64,000 bases of DNA from Monocercomonoides exilis PA203 (taxonomy: Eukaryota; Protista; Preaxostyla), in assembly GCA_001643675.2 (NCBI GenBank), contig LSRY02000033.1:434001-498000 (forward strand), given 5' to 3'. The notes beneath the pieces are model-generated. The model made no database searches. It saw nothing but the letters and a program-made list of their open reading frames with translations, and was not told where the DNA came from. Positions 15,838 to 39,829 of the stretch are shown piece by piece. The position numbers were made by a program, and so were the translations under genes. Numbering within the stretch: the first letter of the stretch is position 1; every line of letters begins with the position of its first letter.

Positions 15838-16307
15838 TTGAAATCTAGATTTTCATTTACACAAAAAATTAAGTTTAGTTTTATTTAACAATTTTCTTTT
15901 CATTATTTTATAATTTATGTTGTTATTAATTCCAAAAATGCATCAAAAATCAAGCAAATAAAAATTTTTGCCCAATAAAAAATTATTTTTTAATTCCAAT
16001 AAATACCTTGATTGAGGATCCAGATAATACTTTAACTGATTCTTCTTTGACAACCCTGTCCATACAGTTATATTCAATGAGAGGAACTCCTTAAAAAATT
16101 CAATTAACTTTATTTTATTTTATTTTGTTTCATTTTTATTTATTTCATTTTTTTGCATCTTCAATTTTTGCATCTAGTGATTTTCACAAACTTTTGAGAA
16201 CTTTTTTCAGATTAATGGTTTTTTTATGAAAAGTTAATAATTTGCACATCTGGTTTGTTTGCAACGTCAAATCAAAGATGGGATGTTGAGCACCTCCATC
16301 TCTTATA

Positions 16308-17271
16308 GGTGAGTATTTTTATTGGCACCAAAAATTATTTTCATAATCTTCATTTCATTAAAGCTCATAAATCTGTTTCATAACTTAAGAACAATAAACA
16401 AATAAAAATTAAGCTATACGTCAAATATTTTTTTAAAAAACTTTCTCAGAAAAACGATCTAATAATTTTTTACTTTTATATTTCGAACAATGTTTTGCTC
16501 GTATTTTCTTGACTGATTGCGGTTGCGAGTTTTTATCACGGAATTCACAAAAACAATTGTATTTTCCGTATTTGTTACTTATTCGTTATATTTTGAACCA
16601 TTTATTTAAGTGAATTTTTGGATTTCACCATTTTTGTTAAAACATGCAAAATCAAGTGAATGTGTTTGTTTTGTAAAAAATGGTCAAAAGATATCGATAA
16701 AATAATCTTTTTTGTATATGATACATGTTTTGAAAACGAATTTTTATTCAAAATAAAAAAGAAATTAAATGATCATGTTTTTTAAAGAATTACATTTATC
16801 TAAGTATTGACAAATTGGCAATTATCAAATATCAAGAATTTGTTGTTCAAAAAACTTATTAAATTTTATGTACTTCATGCAAATCAATAAAACAAACACA
16901 TTCACTTGATTTTGCATGTTTTAACAAAAATGGTGAAATCCAAAAATTCACTTAAATAAATGGTTCAAAATATAACGAATAAGTAACAAATACGGAAAAT
17001 ACAATTGTTTTTGTGAATTCCGTGATAAAAACTCGCAACCGCAATCAGTCAAGAAAATACGAGCAAAACATTGTTCGAAATATAAAAGTAAAAAATTATT
17101 AGATCGTTTTTCTGAGAAAGTTTTTTAAAAAAATATTTGACGTATAGCTTAATTTTTATTTGTTTATTGTTCTTAAGTTATGAAACAGATTTATGAGCTT
17201 TAATGAAATGAAGATTATGAAAATAATTTTTGGTGCCAATAAAAATACTTGTGCCAATTAAAATACTCACC
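16308..17271. mobile_element. Palindromic (foldback/MITE-like) element 1: 361-bp perfect inverted arms (16312-16672 and 16889-17249), 216-bp spacer, 21-bp outer TIR, TA on both flanks
   Basis: Arms read as reverse complements with no mismatch seen. Termini are TA|GGTGAGTATTTTTATTGGCAC and GTGCCAATTAAAATACTCACC|TA. Confidence 0.85.
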
Positions 17272-18724
17272 TAAGTGACCCCTGAGACGATTTGGATGAT
17301 ATTAATGCGGTCAAATTTGTTCAACATAAATTGTCAATCATGTGTTTTATTTACCAAAATTCTTTGAAATGTTCCTTTTGTAATATTTTCAAGTTAAAAC
17401 GAGAATTTAATGTTTTCAACAAATTTTCTTTTCTAACTCGCCAAAATTCACAATCACAAAAGCAAAAACTTGACAATGAAAAGATTTTCATACTAATGAA
17501 ATTTGGTCAGTTGGAATGAATAAGTGAAGAAAACATTCAATTTTCATTTTCACCTGAAAACAAAACAGAAGGAACTTTTAGAATAAAAATTGGAATTATT
17601 ATTTACCAAGATTTCAATATATATTCAAAATTTTATTCGTTTCTGAAATAAGTCATAATGAGTGTTGCGGAAAATAAATAAAAACAACAAGATTTTTTGT
17701 CTTATCGATGTTTGAAGAATTCACATAAAAACCTTCAAATTGAAGGCTGATTGGAACGCATTGCAACGATTATTGTGAACGGAAAAGCTCGGGCAATTGA
17801 TGCAAAAAACATTAATGAATTCACCAGTATGGCAATTGATAGGTTCGTTGTTGCTATTAAAGATAGAAAATGCATGAAAAAATGGAAGACCAGATTAATT
17901 AATCCACCAAGAAATTGAAAATCAATTGGGTGTTCAAAATATCGAATAAGAAAGTTTACCAAGTGACAGCGCTGTTCAATTTTGGACTTTTTTTGATTAT
18001 TGTTTTTTTATTCGTTGCATAAATCTTTCTTAAAAACTTAATAAATTAATTTTGTTATCAACGATCGAAAAAAAGTTATCTTTGAAGAAGAAAAAGAAGA
18101 AGACAACATTCAACAATCTTATCAGAATTTTTCATTCAATAAGAATCGCAAGTCACTTGTATCTCATTTAAGAAATGTTTATTCCCAAAGAATTTCATTA
18201 TCATATGGGTGAAAATACAGACTTTCAAGCTTTTTTGGCACAAGGCATGGAAATAATTGTTTCACTCATAACTATATTTCGCTTACTCAGATTTCAAAAT
18301 ATATTTGATGAGCATATCCATAGACAGGCAACGTTAAAATTGAAATATGAAGTTTTCCAACATTTCGCGAATGAAAAAAAAAATGGAACCATTTTTATTA
18401 TGTTTTGTGTTCCCAAAAATTCAATGAAAAAGCTTAAAACAAAATATTTTGCCCCATATTTACAAACTATTCCACATTCATCCTCTTCTGCTTAACAAAC
18501 ATAATCAACTTATTATTTCTCTTTTTCTTTTCTATATCATACACGAATATTCATTATAGCTTTTCGATTATTTCTCTTCCCATCTTTTCCTTCCTTCAGA
18601 CGTGCTTGTGTGTTTCTTTAAAACAATTTCTGAAAATTTTGTATTCAACTCCTGTTGAACTTTAGAAACAGCAACAAAAACGAAAAACATAAAATAAAAA
18701 ATGATCGATTGAAATGCGGAGATT

Positions 18725-18725
<1 letters not shown>

Positions 18726-18774
<49 letters not shown>
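18726..18774 (+). repeat. Poly(A) tract (49 nt)
   Basis: Read directly. Confidence 0.9.
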
Positions 18775-18775
<1 letters not shown>

Positions 18776-19360
18776 GATTTTTAAATAAACTTGATGAATT
18801 TAGCAAACGAAAAAAGTGATCAGAAAAAAATGCCACAATCTATTTTTCAATGAATTTATTTTTCATTGAAATATTTGATGTTATTTATTTAATTGTAAAA
18901 ATATTATTTTGTATGCAAAATTTTAAATTCGATTGCAAGTTCTCTCATTTTGTATTATTATAAATGTAGCTCCTGCTTTTAAAATATAAATAAATAAAAA
19001 TAAAAACATATTATAAAAAACAAAAATAAAACAAAGTATAATAGGGATATATATAAAAAAATACTTTTACAACAAATCCAAAAATCACAAAACATGAATT
19101 AGAATATCAATAACCCTTCCAAACAATAATAACAGATGTTTTAAGAACTATCCAACAGAAACTCATTCACAAATAACAACAATCTCATCAGTAGCAATTG
19201 CAACTGTAACTGTAATTGTAACTGTAACTGCAACTGCAACTGCAATTCTAATCACAAAATAGAAACATTGAAAAAAAGAAAAAAAGTAAAAAAAGAAAAA
19301 AACATAAAAAAAAAAAAGAAAATGTGGTGTTGACCTGCCCTTCATTTGACTACGTGCTGC

Positions 19361-22071
19361 TCAGACAAGCCACGAAAACGAACCAGTCCTCAGAATCTTT
19401 TCCCAAAGCACATGAATTTCGTGATTTACAGCAGGTTCCTTTTTATAACAATCATTCATGCTATTTACTGTCTTTTTCTTTTCTTCCTTCTCTTTCTTTG
19501 CTTCCTCCTCTGCTCTTTTCTTTTCCGCTTCCTCTGCCTCCACTTCTTCTGCTTCTTTTCGATCTTCATCTTCGTAATACTTGTTGATCTCATCGATTGC
19601 AGCACTCAACTCTTCAGGACTCAGCCCCCTTTGCGTCACCTCTATCAGTCTCTGATCTTTCTCTTTTTCTCGCGTCTCCTTCGCTTTCGCCCTCGCCTCC
19701 TCCTTCTCCTTCTTCTCCAGCTCTGCTCGTTCTGCTTCCTCTTTTTCTTGCTTTTTCTTTCTCCGTTCATCTGCCCGTACTTCCTCCATTTCTCTGCCCC
19801 TTCTATACGGTGCTAATTTCTGCCACGCAAATAGCCCTTTCTTCAAACTCAATCTTCGCTCAATCCACTGCACATCCCCTTTCACCAGATACAGCCCCAA
19901 GCAGAACGCCAAATACTCAACAAACAGCCACGCCAGCATCGGAACCAGTGACAGCATCATATTTCTTTCCATCTTGTGCGCTCGCTCAATCAGCTCGTCG
20001 GTCACAACCACCGCTGACATGAACCGCTCTGCTCCTTCCCACGCCTCTCCGCTCGAAGTCGGCGGGTCAAACTTCCCAATCCCATCCAAGCACAGTGTCG
20101 GAATAAGCACAATGGCAATCCCAATCGCTGATCCAAACACAATCCCACAGTAACGCACACTCTTGCTGCACATCGTCTCGAAAGTGGAAGCACCAGGTGG
20201 CTCCATGTTGAATATAAAAATATGCAGAGTGATGATTGCCAAGAACAGCGGAATGAAAGTAATTGTCCACGAGCTCGTGAAGTTGTCTGTTTGATCGTTC
20301 ATTTGTCATAATCATTCCAATCACACACATTCGCATTCACACAAAAAGAACAAAACAAAAAAATGATGAATGAATGAATAAATAAACAAACAAATAAATC
20401 AAATAGAAACATAATTTTTGTGCGCAACAGATACAATTATTAAAAAAAATTAAATAAATAAAAACGTAATGCCTCTCTTCTCATTCGATTCGCATTCGCT
20501 CATTCACTCATTCACTCATTCATCCTCCTTTAACACTTTGCATACAGCACAGTTTCACAGAAAATAACACCCACGCTAAAATGATTCCAACTAAAGAAAT
20601 TATAAACATAATCAAAGTGAAGCAGAAATCGCCCGGGCAACTCATCCAAAAACCGTATTGAATATTCATTAAGAACATTCCGCCAAAGAACATTATAAAA
20701 TAGAACAAAAGAGAGAATAAAATAGTATCTGAGTTTGTAATCAATCGCCCGTCTTCTGTGAATTTTTGTGTGATATTTTCTGTGGCTGCTGCTTCTCTGA
20801 AGAGCACATCATAAGTGGTCCTATTTTCCTTGATGCTCCTTTCAGGATACGGCTTCGTCACTGGACCATCAACTAAGCGATTGCGGATGTTAAATGTGTG
20901 GTAATCCCCATTCACAAAAGTATCAAGATCCTTGCACAAAAAGTAAAGCATCACAAAAAATCCAGCCACAGATGCCGCGCTGATAATTATTCCCAGCCAC
21001 ATATCATCTCTGTCCTTTATGAATATAAACATGAAAAACAAAAACAATGTCAGCATCACAATTGAAACACTGAAAAGGCCTTTTGACCGAGAAAGGCTGA
21101 ACGAAAAAACCGATCTGGTGACTTTGTTCGTCAAAAGATTCGACACATGCCCATCATCAGCCAGCTTGTCGAAAACTGGCCCACGGATAAAATTCGTTGC
21201 GTAGAAGATGGCAAAGAAAAAGAAGAAAAGAAACAGCATCAACGATATCCACGTCAATGTGAACAGAATAAAACTTATCCACGGATGTTCGACCGTGTTT
21301 TTCAGATCAAATATATCCTTCCAGAAACCCTGCCTCTTCCCAAACAGCACTTCTGGAAAAGTCCCGTACAACCGAATGGTGTCCTTCCATCCTTTCGGGC
21401 TCAGACCAAATCGGGTCTTGTCCGCAACATCCTGAATGCAATTTAAAGCAAAATACAAATCAACAAATAAACAAAAACGAAAAGAAGCCCATCAAAAAGA
21501 GAGTCACTCGCTGTGCCTGCTCCGGCACAGCGCAAAACACACACATCTGCATTGTTTGGATTGTACGTGTCCAGATCCTGGAATTCGTTCTGGCTCATGT
21601 AGATGTTGTCTCTCAGCCGCGGCAGCTCCTCAACAACAATCTCATGCCAGTACCTTCATCCAGCCAAACCCCGTCAAAATTGCCCATGAAAAAAATAAAA
21701 TGCATGTCATACTCGTCTGTATCCAGCATCTCTCGGAAAAACTTCGATGTCCCCATCAGCCTCATTTTCGTTCTTGTGTCGCATTCCTTCAAAATCCTGC
21801 CAATTTTTCAAAACCCCAAAACCCAACTAAAAATCCCACACCGCTTCCATATGTCCATCGGCACTCCTGCACCACCCGCGTTCAAGCACAAACCGTCCGA
21901 TAACCGCAAAACAGCAAAAAACAAAAAATGCACACTTTTCACATCCACCAGTCCACAATCTTCGTCTGACGAGCTGCTGCACATCAGATCAACATCATTT
22001 TCCACCATGGGAATCAACTCTTGGAAAAGACCCTCCTTTCCTGTGTGGTTATTATTTTCTGAAGATTTCAT
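19361..22071 (-). CDS. Multi-exon multi-pass membrane protein with charged E/K-rich C-terminal coiled coil; hypothetical, weak TMEM185-like WxxxFIPL motif
   Basis: Same-strand ORFs 21808-22071, 20520-21458 and 19361-20302 plus small exons near 21500-21790, separated by GT-AG introns. Many hydrophobic helices. Confidence 0.65.
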
Positions 22072-22650
22072 CGATCTGGTGTATTATATGTTTAATTGAA
22101 TCACACTCAAACGAAAAGGCATCTTCAAGCACGTAGTTTGTTCATTATCATTTCTGCAAAATCTGGTAATTATTTGGAGTGTTTTTGAATTTTTCAAAGT
22201 TTACTGAAAAATATATTAAAGGTGCCAATTTCAAAAAACAAGTTCGAAAAACCAACAGACTCGATGGCAACACAGCCGTCATATCGCTACACATCTTCGC
22301 TGGGGCAGGTGAGGATGGGCAGAGGAAGGGACGAGGGCGGGGTGCAGGTGCATGGCGCAGACACACGCGTCAAAAAATTTTCTGATCCAGTTTTGGAGCT
22401 CAGGCAGGAGGGACGGGGGCAGAAGACTACATACGGTGTGCGCAACACAGATTGCAGTTTTTGTGCATAATGCATTCGGGTTTCGTTTTTTGTTCAGCGT
22501 CCATCCATCTGCGAGGCGAAAAAGGCTTATTCGAAAGAAACGGGAGCAATCTTCAGAGAAAAGAAAAAGGTTTGAGTGCTCGTTGCTGCCTGTGCACTGC
22601 ACGGCATGTTTGGAATCGATTCATATCATTTTGCTTTTTAACCCCTCGTT

Positions 22651-25600
22651 TTGCAATGCAATTCTGACTTTTTGGCAGGCAAAGGCGACGAAGAGGAAGA
22701 GGATGAAGAGGAAGGCGATGAAGAAGAATTCGAGAGCGAAACAGACGAGGACGAGAACTCGGAGTACGAATTGGTTGAAGAAGAAAAGGGGCTGGAGGAG
22801 GGAGCAGGGCAAGAAGATTTTGAGCAGGAGGGCATGGCTGATGAAAACACCGAGTTGGAGAGCAACCAGGAAGAGCCAATGGACCGGCTGGACGAGGACG
22901 ATGAAGACGAAAATGTCGAGGAGGATGAACATACTGGAGAACGGTCAGAAGGCAGCAGCGATGATGACGCTGAAATGAGCAGGAGTGACACGGAGAATCG
23001 GATGGCTGAGAGCGAGGAAGAGGAGGGTGTGGAGAGCGGAAAAGAGAGCGAAGAAGCTGAATACGCTGTGAGCAGCATGCAAGAGAAAAGAGAGGAAGGA
23101 AGTGACTGGGAGCCTGACGTCTCATCTCCTTCTGAAGACAGGGTTCATCTTCAGCCAGTGACAACTTCAGAAAAGCTGAGGAGGGAGGGTTCTGTTGTGG
23201 ATGAGAAAGGAAGGAGAGAGGCTGAGAAAAGCGATGCTGAGGTGTGTGGTGAGAGTGTTGCAGCGACTTTGGGCAGCACGCAAAAGCGAAAGGGAAGGAG
23301 TGCAGCTGCATCATTTTTGATGTCTCTCCAACAGCAGAAAGCTCAGAATATCTTCAGCAGAAAGAACGATGTAGAAGTTGGGGAGAAAAGAATGGCTGAA
23401 GAGAGTTCACCAAAAATGAAGACAAGTCCTGAAGAACAACAAGAGGAAGACTACAGCAGCACAGAGGTAAGTGCAGTAAGCAAAACAGACAAGTCGAAAG
23501 AAGCAGGCGATTTGGATCGGAAAGAACTGCTGGTTTCTGATTCGCAAAGCACAGATATACAAGCAGAATTACCAACTTCTGAAGAAGTGGGAAATGCAGG
23601 AACTCCGTTGGCATTGAAAAGATCGAAAGAAAACGAAAGTGCAGCAAGCATGGATGAATCTGGGTCAACTGCATCAAGAAGACTGCGAACTGGTGGGATA
23701 GGTGAATATTCAGCCAGTCGAGACCAGCCGGCTTCTTCGCTTCTTACTCCACCTTCGACACCTCCATCTTCAGCACATTCTGTGCGCTCCTCACACACAG
23801 CACAAACAGCACGCACACAACGTTCGGTGCAATCAGCAGCAGAGCCGAATTCTTCTCCTTCTCCTTTTCCTTCTCCTTTCATGACTCATGCTTCTTTTCT
23901 TTCGTCCTCATTGACAAGCGCTGCTTCCGCAAATACTTCCGCGCTGATGTCTCCGCAGTTCCCTTCGCCGTTGCAGCTGCAAACCCAGTCGCAATCGCTC
24001 GTGACGCATTCTACTCTCATCCGGGTGTCTGACGGAGGGTTTGGATCTCCTGGTGATTTGGAAAATCCGTTTCAGGGCAGCCAGTTTTATTCTCCTCCTT
24101 CTTCCCCTCTCTCAAACAGCACCGGAGGGTCTGCGCAAGTTGGGAGAGTGCGCAGTGCTTCTGGTAGCTCAGATGGAGCGTTTTCGCCTTCTTCTCCTCC
24201 GGGCGCTTCTTTCTCACCTGCGTTTTCTGTATATTCTGCGTTTTTATCTCCTGAGCAGGAAAAGGAAAGAAAAGCGAAGGGTCAACAGAAAGGCAGCCCA
24301 GGATGGAAGGGAATTGGGAAGGAGAAAGGCAATTGGGAAGATGAGAAACATGCGAATGGGGAATCAGAAGCAAACAGAGATGAGGAAGCAGGCAGATGGG
24401 GAGACAGAGGGAAAAACAGATCTATGGCAGGCGGAGCTCAAACAGGTGGGTATGCGCATCGGTCGGCAATTTGGTCAGAATCTTCGATCGATGGGGAGAC
24501 TGGGCAGGAAGGGAGAGAGACGAGCGAAAGAGAGGTGGAACGTGGGATGTTTGGGGCAGACACAGATCTGAATGGATGGATTAGCCGAAGAGAAGCCGCA
24601 CGGCAGCCAAGAAACAGGACATTGGATGCGGGTTCTGAATCGAATGGGATGGGAAAAGCACAGACAGGGTGGGGATCAACTGCTGCTGCGGGTGATGCAA
24701 GCGCAGAGACTGGAAAGAGTATAGCGCAGTCTAATGACAGACGGTCGCGTTTTGCATCGAATTCGTTCGGAGCAAGTTATTTGACTTCACCACTTCGAGC
24801 ACCAGCCAATTCTGGTTTGGATGCATCAGATCTTTCGCCTGGTTCAACAGCAGCTGAAAGAGGAGGAAGAGGAAGGGAAGGAGCAACAGGAAGAACACAA
24901 TCAACAGATGTGGCTGAGAGCAGTGGGATGGATGCAAAGCAGGAGATGAGGAGGCTGAAGGCGAAGTTGGAGGAAAAAGATGAAACGATTCTTCGTCTTC
25001 TGAAAGAGAAGAAGGAGGAAGCAGAGGAGATGGCGAAGGAGCGAGAGCGGGAAAAGAGCAGAGAGGAGTCAGCGGAGAGGAGCAGGGAAAGAGAGCGGGA
25101 ACGAGAGAAGAGCAGGATTCGGGAGCTGGAGGAGGCAGTAAAGCGGAAGGAGGAGGAAGGGGAGAAGATGCGTGCGGAGATGGAGGAGCTGAGAGAGGAG
25201 GCTGAGCGGAGCAGGCGGGAGATGCGGCGGATGGCGGAAGGGGTGGGAGAGGAGAAGGAGAAGGCAGCGGGGGCGGGGCGAGCTGAGCGGGAGGAGTGGG
25301 AGGAGAAGGAGCGGCGGCTGGTGAAGGAGAAGGAAGAGGCGGAGAGGGAGCTGAAGAGGGAGAAGGAGGCGCGGAAGGAGATGGGGCGGAAGTGGGAGAA
25401 GATTGAGGAAGAGAAGGACATTGAGGTGAAGCGAGTGAAGCGGGCGCTGGCAGAGGCAGAAGGGAGGGTAGAGAGCGAGTGGAAGAAGGGGAGGGAGGCA
25501 GAGAAAGAGCGAGAGAGGGAAAGGCAGGAGGCGAAGGTGAAGGAGAGGAGCATGACACGACAGCTGGAGGAGACGGTGGCAGCAGCACAGGAGGAGCTAA

Positions 25601-27336: not shown

Positions 27337-28026
27337 AGGTGGCATGTGTATGTGGAGAGGAAAGAGGATGAAGCGTGTGCATAATTAAGTTATTTGCGAA
27401 AATTCTGTCAATCTTTCTTTTCTTATCTTTTCTTTTCTCTTCTCTTTTCTTAAACTCAGTGTTTTCCGAAAAAAAGTAATTATCTTAACATTTTCTTTTT
27501 CAAAGCATCTCCATTCATTCCGATGCTTTCTGTGTTTTCTCTGAATTTTCTGTTTGAGTGAAAAAAAAAAAGAAGTAAAACAAAAAGACAAATTTACTTT
27601 TTTTCTGATTCACCAAACAGTTTTCAGAAAGTTCACTTTGCAATTCATCAATCGTCGTTATTCCATTTCACTTTTGGTTCATTATAACCCTTTTTTGGCA
27701 AATGTTTTTTTTTTTAATTTTCTTTTTTCTTTCTTTATTTTTCTTTTGATGATTTGCAACTAGTTTTGCTGTTGCTAATCCAGAAATATTCAACTTATTA
27801 ACAAAAATGTTGAGACAAAAAGATTAAGTTTTTCTGTTGAAATTTCTATTTTAAAAAAATCATGATTTCCTTTTTCAAAATTGTTTTTTTTTTAAGTGAA
27901 GTGAGAAATATAAAAAAAATTTCAAGAAATTTGTTAGCAGTCAGAGAAATCAAAAACGAAGTGTATTCAATTGATTTGACAACAAACAAACAAAAAAATA
28001 ACAATAAATAAAATAAAATAAAATTT

Positions 28027-30255
28027 TCACATCTTCTTCATCGATCCCTGCGGCTGATCAATTGCCGACATCAGAATAGATGGAGGTTTCAGCGGCGGGA
28101 AAGAAGAAACCGGAGATGGCGAGTTAGAAGCCTGCACGGGCGGAGGCGGGGCATCGGTGAAAGGGAAAATGGAGGCAGCAGGCGACAGCGAAAACTGTGC
28201 AGAGAGTGGTTGTGGGAGGCCGATAGTGGGCAAGCGAGGAGCAGGCGGGGGCTTTGAGGGAGGGGGGGGAGTGGGCGGGGTGCTGGAAGAGAGCTGGAAG
28301 GGGATTGAAGGAGGAGGAGAAACAGAAGAAGGAGAAGACATCAGGCTGGAGGATGAGGAGGATGAAGAAGAAGATGAAGCGAACGGGGCTGAAATGTTGA
28401 ATGAGTCATGCGGCGATGTGAATAATGACGATGAATTAGAAGAGGATGAAGAAGAAGAAGAAATCGAAGGATTTGAACCAGAGGAATTCGAAACTGATGC
28501 AGAAAGCGGGGTGTCCAAAGAGAAATACGGGTGCAGAAGCGATGTAGCTGAGGTGACTACCTGCTCTGCCGAAGAGAGCGACCCTTCGTCGCTGAGCATC
28601 CCGCCGTCTGAGCGGAACAACGCTGCGCGCTGCCTCTCGCTGTCTTCGTACACAAACCGGTCTGCCCCTTCCTTCGCGTCGCTGTCCATCCAATCGGCCG
28701 GCTCGTCGGCGATGTTGAACCACTGGTCCATGATGTCCTCTGCCAGCTCCCGCACCTTGTCGTCCTCGTGGTTCACCAGCATGCCCAGCGTCGTGTCTGC
28801 CTCGCACCGCACCATCCGGTCGATGACAATATTTCCGCTCGACTTCTGCAGCTGCTTCGGATCCACAATGCCCATCGCATTCGCCCGCAGCCCGTTGGAA
28901 GAGCCGTCGGACGAAGGAGCCATTGAATCGAAGGAGGATAAAGTGGAGGAAGGGAAAGTGGAGGAAGGAAAGGCAGAAGTAGAAGAAGAAGAAGAAGAAG
29001 GAAATGATGATGATGATGATGATGATTGAGAAGTAGTAGAAGAAGAAAAAGAATGTGATGAAGTCACAGCGTCGTCCTCAGCTGCCAGCATCTGGTCGAA
29101 GCGATGCCCCACAACGAGCATCTGCTGCAGTGTGTCGATGGTAGCGCATTTGACTCTGTTCGAAGGGGCAGACAAAAGCTCGCATATTTTTTCGATCCCG
29201 TTCAAGTTCAGGAAGACAGACAGGCAGCGTGCGGAGTCGCGGCAGAAGTGGCGGAAGCAGGCGAGCATCTGCTCGTGGATCTCGTCGTCGACGTCTGGCA
29301 GCATCTTCAGCACACGCATCATCACGGGGTGGTTCAGGATGTCCTCGGCCTGGGCGATGGAAAAGAGGGAAAGAAGAAAAAGGGGGTTTATTTATTTTGA
29401 AGGGGGGAAGGGGAAGGAGGGGAGAAAGTATGAAGAATGTGATGAATGTTTCGGTTTGAGTCATATCATCAAATAAAAAGAATGAAATGATAGATAGACA
29501 AATGAATTTAAATTTATTTCATAGCAATAAAAACAAAAGCAATAAAATTTATAAACGAAAGCTTCCAAATATTTTCCGTTAATGAATAATAATCGCCAAG
29601 CCCCCAAATAAGATGAAAATAAAAATAAATGAAAATAAAATGCAATGAAAGTTGCATATATTTCACACATGATCAGGATCCCTCCCCATCGAATCGAGTG
29701 TGCGCAACACAGCATATGTCAGATATCCATTGTTTTTGTGGAGGATTTCTGAAGCAATGGTCAGAAAATCAGCTTCGATCAATTTCTGTGTTGTTTTAAA
29801 AAGGAAGGGAAAAAAAGTATTTTTGATGATAAAGAAAGAAAGAAAGAAAGGTAGGAAGGAAGGAAAAAAGAAAGGAAAAAAGAAATGATTGAAATAAAAG
29901 AAGAAGAAAGAATAAATTCCAACATAAAATAAGAATAAGAATAATAATGTGATAAGCACACTTGAACGTAAAATGGAGAGCACCTAGCGATGTTGTTCAT
30001 CATGTGTATCAAAGGCTCAACCACTTCAGGAACAGGTCCTGTCAACATTGAAAAGATCTTTGGAAACGATTGGGTTGTTACAAGCAGCTGAATGGGGAAG
30101 TGGAAAGAGAGAAAAAGAGAAAAAGAGAGAAAGAGAGAAAGAGAGAAAGAGAGAAAGAGAGAAAGAGAGAAAGAAAGAAAGAAAGAAAGAAAAGAAAAGA
30201 AAAGAAAAGAAAAGAAAAGAAAAGAAAAGAAAAGAAAAGAAAAGAAAAGAAAAGA

Positions 30256-30299
<44 letters not shown>

Positions 30300-30307
30300 A
30301 GAGAGAA

Positions 30308-30340
<33 letters not shown>

Positions 30341-31839
30341 AGAAGAGAAGAAAGAAAGATAGCAGTTCAGATAAAATTCAAAGAAAATTTGCAAATTTAA
30401 AGGAAAATTCAACAAATACGTATTAAAAACAATATATTAATTTCAACATTATTTTTTACGAAAAGTATCACAATATGCAGTCCAAAAAAATAAAATAAAA
30501 GACCCCTTCAAATACCTTCACAGCCCGTGGATTGTCTCTTGTGATTCTGTTCAGTGCAGTTGCTGCGCACTCACATATTTGAGTCGAAAGAGGCATACTG
30601 CCTCCCTGCTGAAAGGTCTGGAACGAGCTGTCGCTGGGATCAGTAGAGACAAGAGCCTCAACGACGATGGGGATTCCTTCATAGAGTGTGCGCTCTGCTT
30701 CTTCGATCGCTGCATCTATTGGCGAGGTGCTTGCAACAAGGGCGGCAGAAGGAAAGGGCGAAGGCGCAGCTGAACCTGACAAGAAAGAAGGTCGATCATC
30801 TGAGCTCATTCCATTCGTCTCGCCTGTTTCATCGCCCATTTGCCCGCTGTGTTCCTGTTCTGCATCGGCTTTTTCTTGCTCTCGCTCCAGCCACCGACAG
30901 CGGTCGGATGAGCGCGCTAACGTGGCATATGCATCTATCGCACGAAGATATATGTCTGGAGGGAGCTTTATGTTTTTCACAAGTTCGACAACCGGTCGGA
31001 CAATATCAAATTGAATGCAGTAATTCCGCATATCTGTCCAATATCTCGTGAAAGTTGAAATACATAATAGTGCCTTATTGGCGCATTGTCGAGGAGCATT
31101 AAAATGTTGAGATAATCGAAAATGTCAAGAATTTTTGGAAAAAAAATCGAATCAATGCAAAATAAAAATAAAACGATTCAAAAAATTATACTATCTTTAA
31201 GACGCCTTCATCGTTTGAAGATAAAAATTTCTTAAAATGCACTAATGTTCCTGAATAAAGAACAGTTTCTGTATATTTCGTTGAACGATCGCTTGCTGAC
31301 AATTTGAGAAAAAATGAGAAGGAAAAAACAGATATTTTTCCAAACCAATTGAATTTAATATAACTAGTACATGATATTGGATTGAAGGATATTGTGTTTG
31401 CGAAAGAAGTCGATTAAAAATATCCATTGGATTCAAAGAAACTAAGAGAGCAATTGTTTCTGAATTTTCTTCTGATGATCCTCTTGAAATTGCATCTTCA
31501 ATTGCCTTTATTCCTTCAAATGCTTTTTCAGGTACTTGTGAATTTGCCTCGTCAAGCAACTGAGACATTTGCATTATCTTAGAAAAAAAATTGAAAAGTG
31601 AAATCATCAAAACAGAAAAAGAAAACATTTATTGTAGGCTTAAAGGTTCTTTGTTCCATGTCTTCACGCATTTTATTTATCTCGTTATCTCTTGAACGTA
31701 AACGAATTTTCCCCAGAGATTCGTCATTTTCACTTCTCAAATTCTGAAAGTCTACATCTCGCTGAAATTTGTCTGATCGACCTTTTTGAAAACGACTACT
31801 TTCTCCTCTGAAAAAAGATGTGGAATAACGATTTGACAT
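28027..31839 (-). CDS. Importin-alpha-like ARM-repeat protein (multi-exon) with Ser/Pro-rich C-terminal extension
   Basis: N-terminal basic IBB-like segment (RSDKFQRDVDFQNLR..IRLRSRDNEINKMR), ARM-like helical exons, and LVNHEDDKVRELAEDIMDQWF resembling the importin-alpha final ARM (LQxHExxxVxxxAxxIIxxYF). Confidence 0.7.
30102..30359. repeat. Compound intronic microsatellite (GA)n/(GAAAA)n/(GAAA)n
   Basis: Pure purine tract inside an intron of the importin-alpha-like gene. Confidence 0.95.
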
Positions 31840-31989
31840 CGCAAAATATGATAATTTTTATTTTTCCATAAAAATTATGCTTTTGTTATGAAATGAACAA
31901 AAGACTGAAAATTTCTTTGATAAATTGCCAAACTTTCCAAGATAACCTGTTTCAACAAATTCCAAAAAATTTCAACCATAAGAAAATAT

Positions 31990-32445
31990 ATGCAGTTAAA
32001 CATCCTTTCAACGGATATGAGCCCTGACCATATGCAGGGATTGAAAACGTTATCAAAAGAGTTTTATGATAGAATTTTACTTCAAGCAAAGGATCAATAT
32101 TTGAACAAAGGCTTTGAACGCGTTGTTGCGAAATGGTTTAAAGAAGGATTTGATCATCAATTTGGGTGTGATATAAATATAATGAATGTTCATTTATTGA
32201 GTCTGAAAATTAATTCTTTATTATAACATTATCATCATAGGCCTGCATGGCACTGCATTGCTGGGCCAGAGTTTGCAGCCTTTGTAACCCATGAAGCAAA
32301 ATCCTTAGCATACTTTAACCTTCAATATTCTCCTCCACCAAAAAAAGCTAGTCATACTCAAGGTCAGCAAGAAGATGAATTTGAAAAAAAGAAAGAAGCT
32401 CAACCGATTGCATTTTGGAGGATATTACTTTTCAAGGCGGGTTGA
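31990..32445 (+). CDS. Dynein light chain type 1 (LC8 family), two exons (31990-32165, 32241-32445)
   Basis: Spliced: ILSTDMS...VAKWFKEGFDHQFG|PAWHCIAGPEFAAFVTHE..YF..ILLFKAG*. This carries the LC8 signature FDxxxGxxWHCIxGxxFxxxVTHE and the terminal LFK. Confidence 0.9.
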
Positions 32446-32772
32446 AATAAATAACGACTCCTTTGTTGAATTAAAAAAATTCACTTCATCATTCAATTTT
32501 CTTATGTTTGTTTGAATTATTAATTGAATCATTTAATAAGATCTTGAAAAATCAAAACAAAGATTTCTCTTTTTTTTCAAAATTTAAATAAATGTTTTTT
32601 TTTTTTCTTATTTATTTGTTATATTTTAGCGCATGGCGAATCGTTCATGTTATATGTTCTTTTATTTGAAATAGCAATGAGGAATTTGATTTTCGAGTTT
32701 TCCGGTTGAAAAAAATTATCCAAGACTTTTTTAGAACCCTTAATCAAAATTGATAATACTAGCTTCTTGTCG

Positions 32773-34992
32773 ATGGGGCTTACATGTTCGACACCAGAAG
32801 TTCCAATTAATGTTCTGAATACTAAAGATGAAAACATTTTTGATCTTTCGCTTAAAATTGAGCCTTCAATGACATTGAAGCAATTAAAGGAGAAAGTGGC
32901 AACTTTTATGAGTTTGAACTCTAATAACTTTGTTTTTATTGAGCCTTCTCTAAATGGTGATAAAAATGAATCTGAGTCAATGTCGTTCAAGAAATTAAAA
33001 ATACATCCTGAAAGAATTGTTCTTTTGTACGATAATAATGGAATAAATAACAAAAGAATAGCTTCTCATAAAACTTATTCAAAGGAACTCATTAATGCTT
33101 CCAATGAAAATAAAAGGAAAATTTACGCTTTGAAGAGAAATGGGCAGAATTCTTCAATTGATTCACCTTCTTTATCATCACAAATAGCATCACACCTAAA
33201 TGACGGGCCAAATCTTGCTCTTTCTGAACATGTTTCATCGGATTTTACTTTAAAAGAGATGTCTAATTTTTTCATCCTTATTCAAAACCAGTCAAAGAAT
33301 CAAGATCTTCCTCTTTTTTTGGATACAATTCGAATTCATGATTTAACAATAGTTCCTAAATTCGAGATGGGTTCTTTTTTTGAAGCCGTTGAATATGCAT
33401 GTAAGGAACTTAAATTGCTTGTTGCATATGTTCATAAAGAAGGTGAAGAAGGGCGAACGATTTTTCAAGAAATATTCTGCAAAGATTCAATGATTAATTT
33501 TTTGAACAATGATTGTGTATTTTATGGAATAAGTTTCTCAAAAGCCAAAACTTTTGATAAAGCCACAGAAAAACTGCTTCCCTGCTGTCTTATTTTAGCA
33601 CCGTTAGCAGGACAAATTCATGTGATGCGAATGTTGCGTCTTGGCAAAGGAAAGAAAGCACAGAATGGTAAAAGCTCTTCGTCAACAAGTTCATCGAATT
33701 CCCCACATCCGTCTGTTTCTGTTCATGTCTCTACCGAGACGGTTTTTGAGCAGCTGCTGGCAGCTTCAGTTGAATTGAACGAGATGCATGAGCTTCTCTA
33801 TTCAGCAGGCGATGACGACCACTCTCTTGCCTTGCTGGACAGATTTGTGATGAAATCGATTGTTTCCGAAAGAAATGCCTCGCGAGCCAGTCGTGCAGAT
33901 AACGACGCGCACTCCATAGAATCTGAGATTCTGCAGTCATCTTCTATTATGTATCCTTCTTCGCCTTCTTCTTCATCTTCATCATCATCATCATCTTCTT
34001 CTTCTTCTTCTTCTGGTGCTCGGTCGGCTTCTGCTTCAGCTTCGGCTTCTGCATCTGCATCTTCGTCTGATTATTCTTCAATGGCAAGTGTATCAAATCC
34101 CATTTCACAAGCATCACCTCGCATGTCACCGTCATCTCATTTGTATTCTGACTCTTTCGACCCGTTTTCACCAGCAAGCAGCCAGCCAGCCGACGTCTTG
34201 TCTTCACAAGGAGCAAGAATGGAGTGGGGAGGAGCGCCTCAGAGCGATGCGGAGCTCGCCAGGAACATTGTGAAGATGCTGAATGAGATGGTGCCTGGGA
34301 GTGGGAGTGGGAATGTGAGCAGCGGGCCAGGCGGCATTGGAGGTGTGAAGTCACCGAGGCAGACGCACACGCTGAGTGCAGAGGAAGAGGCAAAGCTGCT
34401 GGAAGACAGGGAAATCGCATCGGCGACGCAGGCTGAGTATGAAGAGTCGATGCTCATTGACCAAGCAAAGGAGCAGTCGCGGAAGGACGAAGAAGAAAGG
34501 CAGATGAGGCTGGTGAGAGAGGCAGAGCTTGCCGAGCAGAGGCGAGCAGAAGAAGCGGAAGCGAAAGAGATCGAGCGATTGGAGAAGCTGGAGACGAGGA
34601 AAAAGATGAATGCGGAACTGGCTGTTCCTGAGCCGTCTGAAGACGAGTCCCTTCCAGCGGGAGAAGTGCGGTGTGTGCTGCAGCTGCGCCTTCCTGCTCC
34701 GTTTGAAACCTTCACAAGAACATTCATCACAAACAACACAATTGCCAATGTGGCTGCTGTGGTCAGGCAGAAGTATCCGGAGCTGCTGGAAAGAGACGTC
34801 AAGCTGGTGTCGTTTCCACGCGTTGTGCATTCTGATGAGCAGACGCTGAGAGAGGCAGGGCTGTTTCCAAGGGCGGCGCTTATTGTGGAGATAAGCGAGC
34901 CTGAAGATGAAGAAGATGATGATGAAGATGAAGAAGGAGAAGGAGAAGAGGGAGAAGGCAGTGCAGAAGAAGAGGGAGCAGATGGGAGATGA
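32773..34992 (+). CDS. FAF1/FAF2-like UBX-domain protein (UBL-like, UAS, coiled coil, UBX); p97/Cdc48 adaptor
   Basis: UBL-like KIEPSMTLKQLKEKV; UAS-like PKFEMGSFFEAVEYACKELKLLVAYVH; QAEYEESMLIDQAK coiled coil; UBX LQLRLP..FTRTF..SFPR..TLREAGLFPRAALIVE. Confidence 0.85.
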   Translation: MGLTCSTPEVPINVLNTKDENIFDLSLKIEPSMTLKQLKEKVATFMSLNSNNFVFIEPSLNGDKNESESMSFKKLKIHPERIVLLYDNNGINNKRIASHKTYSKELINASNENKRKIYALKRNGQNSSIDSPSLSSQIASHLNDGPNLALSEHVSSDFTLKEMSNFFILIQNQSKNQDLPLFLDTIRIHDLTIVPKFEMGSFFEAVEYACKELKLLVAYVHKEGEEGRTIFQEIFCKDSMINFLNNDCVFYGISFSKAKTFDKATEKLLPCCLILAPLAGQIHVMRMLRLGKGKKAQNGKSSSSTSSSNSPHPSVSVHVSTETVFEQLLAASVELNEMHELLYSAGDDDHSLALLDRFVMKSIVSERNASRASRADNDAHSIESEILQSSSIMYPSSPSSSSSSSSSSSSSSSSGARSASASASASASASSSDYSSMASVSNPISQASPRMSPSSHLYSDSFDPFSPASSQPADVLSSQGARMEWGGAPQSDAELARNIVKMLNEMVPGSGSGNVSSGPGGIGGVKSPRQTHTLSAEEEAKLLEDREIASATQAEYEESMLIDQAKEQSRKDEEERQMRLVREAELAEQRRAEEAEAKEIERLEKLETRKKMNAELAVPEPSEDESLPAGEVRCVLQLRLPAPFETFTRTFITNNTIANVAAVVRQKYPELLERDVKLVSFPRVVHSDEQTLREAGLFPRAALIVEISEPEDEEDDDEDEEGEGEEGEGSAEEEGADGR

Positions 34993-36201
34993 AGCAGAAA
35001 GGGGATGTTGCAATAGAATTGTAGATGCAATTTTTTAAAGAAGAACAACAGTTTTTGTGATTTGTCACAATAATTTAGCTTCACTTAATTGAAATGTATT
35101 TCGGAATAATGAAGAATAAAGTTATGACTATTTTCTTTTGGATGGAAAAATAAATTGCGTTTTGCGAGCAATTTACGACAAAAAATCAAAAGGATTCGAT
35201 TTATGAACTTCGTTTTGAACACATTTTCGATATCTTCATATCAATTAAATCTAATCGTTATTTCATTATTTTTTTTTTTTCCATTCATTTATTGCAATAT
35301 TAGGATATATAGTCATGCGTCAAATAGTCATTTCCATTGAATCTTCCATGTTTTTAATGAACTTTTTGTTGTTTTTTTTGAATTCATTGGAGTTTTGTAA
35401 CATTTATGTTTTGTTAATCATTCATCATTTGCTTTGAGTATGAAGTTGCATTTCGTCATGATTTATGTTTTTTCTATTCTTTTTCTTTTTTTTTCTTTTT
35501 AACTCCATTGTCAATTTATTCTGATAATGTTTTTGTTGATGGGAAAAAAAAATCATTTCAACTGCTTATTTCTTTCTTCCTCTGATTTTTTATGTGATAA
35601 CCTTTGTCAATTCATTTTCGCTCATATTATTTTGCGGAATAAAATAGTTTTTTTTTAAAAAAAAAAATATTGGACAAATATTATGAAAAAGAAAAAGAAA
35701 TGAGTTTGCAATGTTTAATGCTGTTATTTCATTTCCGCTCAATTTGAAACAAAAAATAAAAAAAAATTGTAATCATAACTCTCTTTTTTTAAAAAAAATC
35801 ACTCTTTGATAGACGACATGCTCAAGAAAGTTAGCCTTTAAAAAATATAAATATAACATGAATAGAACTCAAATTTTCGAGAGTGCGTAATGAATAATTC
35901 CATTATTCTTTGAAAGTATCTGCTCTTCCTTCATTGAGTTTGTTGCAATTATTAAAACATTCAAAAAACAGTTGCTTTGTATTTACAGTTTGTTTTTTTT
36001 CTGTTTTTCCCCAAACATAAAATAAAAACAATCATAACAATGTGTTATGGTACTGTAAAGGCCAAATAATAAATACAATAAAAAAATACAAATTAATAAA
36101 TATATATAGAAAAAAAAGAAATAATCTTCTCACACATTTCATAATTTTCCTTTGCTATTTGCGACAGATACCCTCTTTTTCATCAATCTTTTACACTCTC
36201 C

Positions 36202-37677
36202 TTAATGAGCAACCTGAACAGCAGCAATGATTGCTGCACCAAGCCCGCTTCCATCTTGTGTCCCCACAACATGTACTTCTGGGGGTGTTGGACCCATCAT
36301 CAGTGACTTACAGCACTTGTCCACTGATGCGTGCAGCTCCTCCTTGTATCCAATGTGCTTGTGATAAACTGAACCGTCAATGGCCACAGTCAACTCCTCC
36401 AGCTGTTCCCCGGTGGTCACAATGTGTTGAATGAGAGTTGAAATTGCAACAGCCGCATAGCGGGCGCTTCGAACAACGATTGCATGGAACAAAGAACGAA
36501 TCAAAACAACTTCGTGCAGTGGAATGGCATTTTTGTCCAGTGATTTGTCTTCACAAAAACGAATGATAAAGCTTCGTGCCATATCCATGTTTGGTGAGCG
36601 GTCATGTTCAACTTTTCCAATTTCGATTAGTGACAATTCTTCATTTTTGTCCCAAACTCCGATTTTCTCTTGATCGAAGCAGTTAAGAATCCAACCGCAT
36701 CGAATGCATTTGTTCATGCACACGCGAACCAGCATTGGAAGATAACGACCAGAAACCATTTTTTCAAGTCGCTGTTGCCCTTGTTTCCTTGTCATGTGAT
36801 TGACTTCGTCATCTTCTGGAGTACTTGGAAATCCATCATAGCCTCCCCACTCCATGTTAATGATCATTTTCTTTGATGCCGCTTCTGACGATGACGATGA
36901 TGATGATGATGCTCCTTCTTGATTAATTTTCGTGATTGCTTCCATTCTTTCCTGATAGCATGCATTTGAACCTGTTCCGAGAATCACTCCGATCTTGGCT
37001 GTTGGATGCTCAGTAGTTGATGCGCAAAGTGTTCCAACTGTATCATTACACAAAGCAACAACTTTGACCCATTCGTATTTACGCTTTGCCAGTTCTGCGT
37101 GCAATAATTCAACAACGTCCTTTCCAACAACACCCGAAGCAACAAATTCTTTTGTCCACATAATCAATTTCCCTGAAGCAATTGAAGTCTGTTGAATAGG
37201 AAAAGAAAAAGTGAAGCCAACTGGCAGCACTTCAGGCCTTGGTTCAAGGAATGATTTGTTTTCTTCCAAAAATTCGACAATGAAACTTGCGATTGTTGAA
37301 AACAAGATTTCGCCTGTTGGAATCTTTGGATCAAGAACCATGCTGCGCTGCACCTTATTGCGAATAGTGTTCAATTCTGTTTTTATAAGCAAGCAACGCA
37401 AATTTGTTCCTCCAAAATCAACTGCAAGAAACACTCCACTTTCATTTCCTGATGGCGTGTCAGTAAAGCTTGGGATCATCATCAATGATCCTCCTTTCCC
37501 TGCAAGCCCAGATTTCATTGTTTGTAGCATGTGATGAGAAACATCATGCATTTTTGTCACATCGCAATCAAACTGTTGAATAAATTGTTCCATTTCACGA
37601 AGTCGATCTTGTTCGCATAATTTTATTGATCATCTTTGTAGATTAAGGGACTTTTCTCAACGAAATGAGTCAGACAT
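36202..37677 (-). CDS. HK: Hexokinase (eukaryotic type); probable short first exon MSDSF at 37662-37677
   Basis: Motifs LAVDFGGTNLR, LPVGFTFSFP, WTKEF, NDTVGTL, ILGTGSNACY, INMEWG, EKMVSGRYL, IDGSVY, DGSGLGAA. Confidence 0.95.
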
Positions 37678-38716
37678 TTTTTTAATATTTTTTCATATTT
37701 ATCTTTAAAAAAAAATAAGATAATTAATTATATCAAATGAAAATAAAATTTACTTCTCTGAATTAATAATAAAAATTTTCTCAATTTTCACACTAACTAA
37801 TCACATTTTTTTTTATTTAAGGAAAACAATGATATCATTTCATGAATAAATAATTTTACACACTAAAAGGTTCGTTTTATTTTTAATAAATAAATTGATA
37901 ATAAATTGTATTTATTATTCTGGAGAAACACGGAGAAATTTTTGAGGTTTTCAAACATGTCAAATACAAAACGTTCACGTAGTTATTTGTATCAAATGCA
38001 AAGATTGTTAATAGTTGAAACGGGAAATATATTTTTTATTTAAAACTGTAGTGAAAAAAAGATTTAACGAAATATTTTTTTAAAAAGATTCAAATAAACG
38101 CTGTTGAAAATTGGAATTTTATAATGAAACGTTTTAAACTGAACAATTTTTATTGCTGAAAACCATATGTTTATGATATCGTGGATGAATCGCTTTGGTA
38201 TTTTTTTACAGTTTTTTCATTGAATGGTTTCATTCATGTGATCCGGAATAATGAAATATTTGGGAAACATTTTTTTTCCAAATACGCTTTCTTCCATTTT
38301 CAACAAAACAAGCTCTATTCATAACTTCATTACTGTCAAAATTAATCGAATAAAATGTGAAGACTTTTTTCAAAATGTCAACGTTCACATATGAGTGATT
38401 CTTTTTGATGTTAAATGTTTATCAAATTAAATGACTATCCAAATATTTTTTTACAGATATTTTATGAGATGAATTCAACGATTTTTAAAAAAAGTTGAAC
38501 ATCCATTTCGAAAACTTTCATTAACCGAAAACAAGTTTGTCGCAAATTTTTTTGAATTGTGTTAAACAAATGGGGAAAAATATGAACATTCAAGCTTTTT
38601 TGTTCAAACCATAAAAATAATAATTCATTCATATCTTTATTTATCTTTTTAAAATTTAAGTATGAATTGAATTTTAATAACTGTTAACAAGAATTACTGT
38701 AGCACATAACATGATT

Positions 38717-39093
38717 CAGATATCGCACAAAATACCGGACAAGATCGATATCTCAATAACCGCAAGAAGAAAAATTCTAATAATTTTCATCAAAATATAT
38801 CTCATCAATACAAACTCACATGACATACAAGACTTTCATGACTTCCTCGTTTGAACTCAGAAAAAATATATATCGAAATCTCGGAGAAACTCAAAATCCT
38901 ATTTCTCCGAGATTTCGATATATATTTTTTCTGAGTTCAAACGAGGAAGTCATGAAAGTCTTGTATGTCATGTGAGTTTGTATTGATGAGATATATTTTG
39001 ATGAAAATTATTAGAATTTTTCTTCTTGCGGTTATTGAGATATCGATCTTGTCCGGTATTTTGTGCGACGTCCGGTATTTTATGCGATATCTG
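38717..39093. mobile_element. Palindromic (foldback/MITE-like) element 2: 167-bp perfect inverted arms (38723-38889 and 38902-39068), 12-nt loop, 24-bp CAG-initiated outer TIR
   Basis: Arms checked as exact reverse complements. Loop is CTCAAAATCCTA. Termini are TT|CAGATATCGCACAAAATACCGGAC and GTCCGGTATTTTATGCGATATCTG|TA. Confidence 0.87.
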
Positions 39094-39829
39094 TATCTTG
39101 TGACCTCGTAAGATTATCAAAAAACAAACAGATTTTATTTTTAATATTGTATCACAAAAAGTTCATCTGCTGTGAAATGTTTTTCTATGAAAATACACGA
39201 AGTTGTATATTATGTCCCCAAGATGATATCATTAATTCAACAATGAAGATTTTCGGAATGACGATTCCAAGCTGGTATTTTCTTTGTTGAAAAATTTTCC
39301 ATTGAAATGTTAAATAATTTGTATTTATGTAACAGCCCGATATTAATGACGATCAAATTACAAAATAGTCATCTTTGACATTATCATTATTATTACGTTC
39401 ATGAATTTATTAAATTGGAACATTTTTGAAATGAAATTTTCGATCTTGAAAATATGGAAAACAATATCATGCATTTTGTATTTTGTTCCACTTGACATTT
39501 TATTTAATATTCGTAATCACATGATAATTTCAAATGCTTTTTTCAGAGGACGAAAGACAATTAATGGTATGATGAATGTGAATGTTTGGAATAAATTCTT
39601 CTTTTTTCATTTATGCAGAAAATATTTTTACCATTATTGATTAAGTTTATTATCAAAAACATTTCATGAATCCTCAATATTCTATTTTGATAAAGTCTCT
39701 GCTTCTGAATATTCACATTTTATTTGTTAAAGAAATTCAACAATTTCAAAAAATTGTGGGAACAAAAACTTCGAAATGTGAAATTTGCATTTGAAGTTCG
39801 AAATGGTATATCTTTCAATGAAAAAGGTT

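Follow-up and report, generated by a model that had tools for sequence, protein, structure and literature searches.

Why should two palindromic elements in one stretch of the Monocercomonoides exilis PA203 genome each carry a single copy of their terminal sequence at the left end and two copies at the right? The question concerns element 1 (16308-17271) and element 2 (38717-39093) of the window, by which is meant the whole 64,000-nucleotide (nt) stretch of DNA analysed here (C29:434001-498000). The answer favoured here, with a probability of roughly 0.85, is that both are non-autonomous, non-coding hairpin miniature inverted-repeat transposable elements (MITEs) of the pogo/Tc1-mariner kind, which insert at TA, are moved in trans and keep their arms perfect by arm-to-arm conversion. 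Copies commonly vary in unit number, and the end asymmetry is an instance of this polymorphism; the canonical state is symmetric, with doubled units at both ends.

Element 1 (964 nt) is built from two 361-nt arms, 16312-16672 and 16889-17249, which are 100% complementary and enclose a loop of 216 nt, while element 2 (377 nt) is built from two 167-nt arms, 38723-38889 and 38902-39068, which are likewise 100% complementary around a loop of 12 nt. The left terminus of element 1 (16308-16328) reads GGTGAGTATTTTTATTGGCAC. At its right end, the inner copy GTGCCAATAAAAATACT (17233-17249) is followed by T at 17250 and then by the outer copy GTGCCAATTAAAATACTCACC (17251-17271), which shows one mismatch to the left end and generates a tandem period of 18 nt. 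Element 2 repeats this arrangement with an inner copy at 39051-39068, C at 39069 and an outer copy at 39070-39093, again with one mismatch to the left end and with a period of 19 nt. TA lies on either side of element 1, while element 2 is bordered by TA at the right and by TT, a decayed TA, at the left. Neither element contains an open reading frame (ORF) of more than 51 amino acids (aa), and as single strands both form near-perfect hairpins from which the extra unit bulges out (fold z-score -44). The layout reported in the earlier note, with perfect arms (here 361 and 167 nt) and a tandem 18- or 19-nt unit at the right end, is thus confirmed in both elements, whose features are as follows.

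16306..16307, unstranded: left TA target-site duplication of element 1; almost every family-1 copy has TA at either end.
16308..16328, plus strand: left terminus of element 1, a single 21-nt terminal unit, GGTGAGTATTTTTATTGGCAC; in canonical copies a second, 18-nt unit, CAGTTTTTTTATTGGCAC, comes after it.
16312..16672, plus strand: left arm of element 1, 361 nt, 100% complementary to 16889-17249.
16673..16888, plus strand: loop of element 1, 216 nt, non-palindromic; its second half is dimorphic across family 1.
16889..17249, plus strand: right arm of element 1, ending in the inner terminal unit (17 nt, 17233-17249).
17250..17271, plus strand: junction base T of element 1 (canonical G) and outer right terminal unit with a private A>T.
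17272..17273, unstranded: right TA target-site duplication of element 1.
38715..38716, unstranded: target site at the left of element 2, decayed from TA to TT; C29:472715 stands in the list of single ends with this one mismatch.
38717..38740, plus strand: left terminus of element 2, a single 24-nt hybrid unit with a CAGAT tip of the outer type and the diagnostic C at 38728 of the inner type.
38723..38889, plus strand: left arm of element 2, 167 nt, 100% complementary to 38902-39068.
38890..38901, plus strand: loop of element 2, 12 nt.
38902..39068, plus strand: right arm of element 2, of which the last 18 nt (39051-39068) are the inner unit.
39069..39093, plus strand: junction base C of element 2 (canonical T, the last base of the 19-nt period) and canonical outer right unit.
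39094..39095, unstranded: right TA target-site duplication of element 2.

The 8-nt flanks of element 2 (38709-38716 and 39094-39101) form a near inverted repeat, ACATGATT and TATCTTGT, which places the TA target in the middle of a short near-palindrome.

The relatives of the two elements bear on the asymmetry. A search of the genome (82,301,135 bases in 101 contigs) with element 1 recovers about 14 full-length copies at 90-94% identity, together with fragments and interrupted copies (family 1), and a search with element 2 returns 545 first-look candidates, 40 of which were scored at 82-91% identity (family 2). Copies were excised in query orientation, and the ends were read in 14 family-1 and 24 family-2 copies. 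Both families are multi-copy and dispersed over many contigs; the hairpin build is common to all copies of both, and TA flanks nearly all of them. Both ends are doubled in 11 of the 14 family-1 copies, which read TA followed by GGTGAGTATTTTTATTGGCAC-CAGTTTTTTTATTGGCAC-CAAAAATT... with the mirror image at the opposite end. Two further copies, L005 and L014, carry a single unit at each end, and the window copy alone among the 14 is mixed, having a single left end and a doubled right end. The canonical end of family 2, identical in plan on both sides, reads TA followed by CAGATATCGCATAAAATACCGGAC-ATCGCACAAAATACCGGAC-AAGATCG..., with AAAATACCGGAC as the core of the unit, and the sampled copies comprise 15 doubled/doubled, 7 single/doubled and 2 single/single cases. 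Across the genome, the doubled family-2 end yields 286 matches (43 nt, at most 3 mismatches) against 0 for a reversed-pattern control, which, together with the fold z-score of -44, shows that the pattern is not due to chance. Matched 35-nt patterns (at most 2 mismatches; controls 0) detect 340 doubled and 130 single ends of family 2, and the paired coordinates of the listed matches define at least 22 single/doubled and at least 12 single/single copies, so that the mixed state is common.

These counts leave little of the two explanations advanced in the earlier note. A built-in end asymmetry is contradicted by 11 of the 14 family-1 copies, by most family-2 copies and by the pogo-type element L061 described below, all of which are doubled at both ends, and a recurrent process that makes hairpins out of ordinary elements with terminal inverted repeats (TIRs) is at odds with a hairpin build common to every copy of both families. 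The wording of a doubled right end likewise carries little meaning, since the loop of only 12 nt makes left and right arbitrary in family 2, and the orientation of the family-1 loop differs between two duplicated loci. A spread of unit number from one end to the other within a copy was also considered and set aside, as the listed coordinates fit independence of both ends.

Further variation is seen among the copies. Six family-2 copies (L036, L041, L042, L044, L045 and L058) carry a second type of outer terminal unit, CAGTTTGTGCAAAAAATACCGGAC, with the same core as the standard type, and some copies combine the standard tip at one end with a tip of this alternative CAGTTTGTGCAAAAAATACCGGAC type at the other. 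Two family-1 copies, L063 (C1:2543300-2549300) and L064 (C67:148300-151000), have been split in the vicinity of the loop by 4.8 kb and 1.5 kb of inserted sequence, respectively, and the ORFs within the 4.8-kb insertion are of low complexity.

The details that gave the right ends the look of repair junctions follow from the same tandem plan. Because the inner unit is without the cleavage tip (GGTG in family 1, CAGAT in family 2), the period (18 or 19 nt) does not reach the length of the terminal unit (21 or 24 nt), and the right arm accordingly stops 4-6 nt short of the left terminus. The apparent extra nucleotide is the last position of the period, canonically G in family 1 and T in family 2, which has privately become T and C in the window copies. 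The single mismatch has a different source in each element. In element 2 it corresponds to a family-wide diagnostic difference, T in the outer unit versus C in the inner unit, and the single left unit is a hybrid that combines the outer tip with the inner-type C and therefore pairs perfectly with the right inner unit while showing one mismatch to the right outer unit. In element 1 it is a private A>T change in the outer right unit; the inner unit at this end belongs to the outer type. The 4-6-nt shortfall, the extra nucleotide and the single mismatch are parts of an inherited tandem layout and no scars of a junction.

A reading in line with the earlier note holds that each hairpin arises de novo, either by a recurrent repair accident in which synthesis switches from an inner right-end site onto the left TIR, or as a member of a foldback class with asymmetry built in, and that a truncated copy, a single filler base and a full terminus are left behind. 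The window copies do match its description, and fold-back copying does occur in family 1, as seen at L062 (C6:240200-242300). There, a family-1 copy exists as a 900-nt, 100% palindrome with a 14-nt spacer (arms 139-1038 and 1053-1952), in which one insertion-carrying arm and its adjoining sequence are mirrored and the normal loop is lost, and which looks like a product of fold-back copying. However, every copy, at many TA-duplicated loci, has inherited both the hairpin build and the tandem geometry, the canonical state is doubled at both ends (L061 included), and the supposed filler base is a canonical period position occupied by G or T in other copies. Moreover, the 216-nt asymmetric loop has been kept in element 1, contrary to fold-back resynthesis; the window copies retain the family loop that L062 has lost, and resynthesis of this kind does not fit them. 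This reading is thus largely refuted and can be regarded as very improbable. A different reading, in which arm identity is kept not by patchy gene conversion but by episodic re-synthesis of a whole arm after hairpin cleavage or a transposase-induced break, one arm being copied from the other and the changes in unit number remaining as scars, appears unlikely; if it were true, hairpin MITEs would offer a natural system for small- and large-scale fold-back repair, with L062 as an overshoot.

The functional end of each family would consist of a terminal unit, composed of the cleavage tip and a core of ~13 nt, followed directly by a tip-less second unit, normally at both ends, and the paired units most likely represent two adjacent predicted transposase-binding sites. 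Against this canonical build, the window copies would differ in unit number only, the left end being single and the right end doubled. Gain or loss of a unit is likely to result from short-repeat slippage or unequal exchange. In family 2, slippage or unequal exchange between the two units would remove 19 nt, and a crossover inside ATCGCA would generate the hybrid unit. Among 35 perfect single ends of this family, the outer-type T is present in 20 and the inner-type C in 15, and the occurrence of both classes indicates that unit loss happened more than once; the sequence pattern implies several independent single-end events. In family 1, the window copy could have arisen by a comparable loss or, from an ancestor in the single/single state, by an 18-nt re-duplication. 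Element 1 is most simply explained by the re-duplication: the first 150 nt of the loop are nearly identical between the window copy (L001) and the single/single copy L005 on the same contig, which favours gain at the right. Alternatively, a unit may have been lost at the left, with point changes following.

Alternatively, unit number might be changed not by slippage or unequal exchange but in transposition, by a transposase that chooses ends aberrantly or cleaves aberrantly at or between the two sites. The two sites abut, and a synaptic complex could engage either; single/single copies with clean TA flanks, seen at many loci in family 2, indicate that such copies are transposing. Against this, single ends retain the outer tip (CAGAT or GGTG) in register with either unit type (20 and 15 cases). 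The tip joined to either unit is the product of homologous misalignment, whereas cleavage at an inner site would remove it, and a direct role of the transposase in changing unit number is decidedly unlikely.

While unit number accounts for the ends, the perfect arms call for an explanation of their own. The two arms of one copy would be repeatedly overwritten by each other in place, through intramolecular gene conversion between inverted repeats, and this conversion would fail within ~10-20 nt of the homology borders, leaving changes to survive only at the loop edge, in the outermost unit and in the flanks. Arm divergence in family 1 averages 0.64% within copies versus 6.5% between copies, and 79 copy-private substitutions are present on both arms versus 31 positions at which the arms differ. 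The family-1 maximum-likelihood tree joins the two arms of the same copy as sisters for 14 of 14 copies and has a star-like shape (stems 0.009-0.046, tips 0-0.015). The corresponding family-2 tree places the arms as sisters in 16 of 24 copies, with a bimodal divergence within copies (0-3% or 5-24%) against 15.5% between copies, as expected if copying ends once the arms have drifted too far apart. Arm mismatches are concentrated in the loop-proximal fifth (family 1: 30 of 31; family 2: 45 of 56), and at the outer border asymmetric changes occur only in the outermost unit. Such an edge effect is predicted by homology-dependent copying between inverted repeats, and it explains why the window copies show errors nowhere but in the outer unit, which is unpaired, at the junction base and in the flank.

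A pair of duplicated loci bears on the same question. L012 (C91:1147030-1147993) and L013 (C91:1374311-1375274) are the same family-1 insertion in a segmental duplication, lying 227 kb apart with the same flanks and strand; over 1,400 nt the two right flanks show no difference, and the left flanks agree at ~98-99%. Between the two copies, differences are seen at 5-6 arm sites, each of which is symmetric in a copy with 100% complementary arms, so that symmetric change arises in place.

Perfect arms could otherwise reflect recent insertion from sources that were themselves perfect palindromes, without any copying in place. The termini are better conserved than the interiors, the families may still turn over, and many family-2 copies show 0 arm differences, all of which such an origin would accommodate. 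It accounts poorly, however, for private unpaired changes (the left TT of element 2, both junction bases and the outer unit of element 1), for private symmetric arm changes in the window copies (stems of 0.022 and 0.035) and for the symmetric change at L012/L013 after segmental duplication, and it needs arm homogenisation in the source lineages regardless. Recent insertion alone is therefore an unlikely explanation. Of the two origins that the earlier note allowed for mismatch-free arms, active homogenisation is upheld by the sister arms of family 1 and the loop-edge mismatches, while recent origin is not needed.

The assembly itself deserves the same scrutiny. The M. exilis PA203 Nanopore assembly was treated with Nanopolish and ten rounds of Pilon (PMC8767320), and the palindromes or their symmetry could in principle be products of long-read assembly and short-read polishing, especially as reads from the two arms are mutual reverse complements. 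Nevertheless, the build is common to dozens to hundreds of copies at different loci, and arm identity is not forced on them, with 0-24% divergence in family 2 and 1-7 loop-edge mismatches in family 1. Cross-mapping between copies cannot yield copy-private symmetric variants. An artefact of this kind is highly improbable.

The loops of family 1 exhibit a more complex pattern than the arms. The loops of L012 and L013 run in opposite directions and differ strongly over a dimorphic segment of ~45-100 nt, the rest being near-identical. This reversal may represent either a flip by arm-arm recombination or an exchange with another copy, and the pair was not accepted as clean proof of a simple arm-arm crossover, because a plain flip is insufficient for loops that differ in the dimorphic segment. 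The second half of the family-1 loop (for example, window 16820-16880) occurs in two distinct versions, in 8 versus 6 of 14 copies, which do not track the arm tree; the arms of L001 and L005 differ by ~6% despite the shared start of the loop. Collectively, these patterns suggest that family-1 copies are mosaic and that conversion may also take place between copies.

The assignment to a transposon class is supported by an element and by an insertion site. L061 (C36:539690-541952), 2.26 kb in length, is bounded at either side by the doubled ends of family 1 and has, ~130 nt inward from each end, a third unit that is degenerate. It contains a decayed, frameshifted transposase, one fragment of which matches positions 74-127 of DDE_1 (PF03184) at 24.7 bits (cut-off 22), while the preceding fragment, in another frame, shows a weak match to positions 5-71; the fragments display the expected ...DET..., ...VDSHSS... 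and ...QPFDRG... stretches. Family 1 has only its outer ~126-160 nt in common with L061, and the arm interior is not shared. The combination of doubled ends with DDE_1 identifies family 1 as a pogo-type MITE, and judged by these sequences it is family 1 only whose termini are common to a putative transposase-encoding element of the pogo group. Both families are small, non-coding, multi-copy and dispersed, and are in this respect MITEs. Family 2 shares the layout and the TA duplication of family 1. On C45, a family-2 copy is nested in a family-1 copy, reading ...CACTTAAATA-element-TAAATGGTTC..., versus ...CACTTAAATAAATGGTTC... in the uninterrupted window copy, so that TA is present once in the empty site and twice in the filled site and was duplicated upon insertion. 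The filled and empty sites on C45 and the DDE_1 partner L061 bear out the assignment to the Tc1/mariner/pogo kind with TA duplication made in the earlier note. Its suggestion that the doubled unit acts as an extra binding site holds in part, as the repeated unit has the appearance of such a site and binding is a prediction. Mobilisation in trans and transposase binding to the units are predicted from the conservation of the units and their occurrence in L061.

The 190 nt on each side of L061 (C36:539500-542150; 1-190 and 2454-2643) are 99% inverted repeats of each other, so that the element occupies a TA at the midpoint of a further palindrome. At the level of the genome, at least 732 first-look candidates for DDE_1 (pogo-type) loci are present, and most of the 150 that were scored have stop-free open frames of 300-680 aa, many of them of 400-680 aa; pogo-type transposons constitute a very large and probably active fraction of the genome. 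Several candidates for an autonomous partner of family 2 were rejected. L065 and L066, with doubled ends 5.7-6.2 kb apart, are each two separate MITEs, and the DDE_1 loci 1.4 kb from the family-2 copies L036 and L038 have no family-2 units adjoining in the examined DNA. Between the two family-2 MITEs of L065, a run of ORFs extends over 2474-5115 (C26:286773-289414), of which one carries a ubiquitin-hydrolase-like GNxCYxxS motif and two (352 and 244 aa) carry cysteine and histidine motifs.

Several points weigh against the interpretation as pogo-type hairpin MITEs with arm-to-arm conversion. Binding of the units by a transposase is a prediction drawn from their sequence, and a transposase-bearing partner of family 2 was not found among the examined loci. 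The family-1 event may have been either a gain at the right or a loss at the left. Part of the divergence between copies may predate insertion or reflect lineage diversity among active sources; conservation is 2-3 times stronger at the termini than inside the arms (in family 2, 3.2% versus 9.9% from consensus), and the star-like tree alone is for this reason no proof that all symmetric changes arose in place. Additionally, the ten short-read polishing rounds (PMC8767320) could have slightly inflated arm identity.

Comparison with characterised systems places the two families within a known kind of element. MITEs derived from pogo/Tigger elements include the Tigger-related MER elements of mammals and Emigrant/Lemi1 of Arabidopsis. 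Like these, the elements described here are short, non-coding, multi-copy and dispersed, are flanked by a TA duplication and, in family 1, carry the termini of a ~2-kb DDE_1 partner; unlike them, nearly the whole element is one hairpin, with arms of 167-380 nt kept identical in place, and the arm interior is not common to the partner, which shares only the outer ~126-160 nt. Drosophila pogo itself reportedly has two copies of its recognition sequence at each end, and in this feature it resembles both families, which have more than one copy of a short, predicted recognition sequence per end. The Drosophila pogo transposase recognises a 12-bp TIR sequence, according to the title of Wang, Hartswood & Finnegan 1999 (NAR 27:455) as cited in PMC4231638. 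Unlike in Drosophila pogo, the copies in both families abut head to tail with a fixed period of 18 or 19 nt and number one or two per end.

Tc1-like elements of the inverted repeat/direct repeat (IR/DR) type, such as Sleeping Beauty and Tc3, have two binding sites ~150-200 bp apart within each 200-250-bp inverted repeat and a DDE_3-type transposase, and their asymmetry, which involves a half-site specific to the left end, is fixed and functional. They share two sites per end with the present families and demonstrate that real end asymmetry exists in the Tc1/mariner superfamily. Identity with the IR/DR type was rejected, as the sites here abut at a period of 18 or 19 nt, the family-1 partner is DDE_1 and not DDE_3, and the asymmetry is variable. 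The Drosophila Foldback (FB) element has long arms composed of arrays of short tandem subrepeats and a 9-bp target duplication. Identity with FB was likewise rejected, as the arms here are unique sequence except for the two terminal units and the duplication is TA.

Arm-to-arm conversion and inversion are familiar from Y-chromosome palindromes and plastid inverted repeats. These systems resemble the present elements in their concerted arms and in a central segment found in either orientation (L012 versus L013). They differ in scale, the arms here being small (167-380 nt) and set in MITEs, with conversion deduced from sequence patterns. Recombination between TIRs is also described for insertion sequences (Ling & Cordaux 2010, PMC3004938). 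A literature search for M. exilis transposons returned no matching paper, and the M. exilis genome paper, which reports 35% unclassified repeats, contains no mention of MITEs or inverted repeats (PMC8767320).

The kind of element is thus already known. What is added here is the two-unit anatomy of the ends and the polymorphism of one or two units, with its likely origin by slippage, together with the edge effect of arm conversion and a second family of ~380-400 nt built on the same plan. Regarding the idea of the earlier note that such hairpins could act as dsRNA/siRNA sources, four Piwi-domain loci are present in the genome. The main value of the analysis lies in a correction, since the shared asymmetric architecture amounts to unit-number polymorphism of an inherited two-site end and calls for no new mechanism of hairpin making. 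Beyond this, the families constitute a natural data set on the number of adjacent binding units that a pogo-type end requires, with the 1/1, 1/2 and 2/2 states each represented at many loci. They also inform on the reach of arm-to-arm conversion toward a homology border, show how old MITE arms can look young, and help to classify part of the 35% of M. exilis repeats that are unclassified (PMC8767320).

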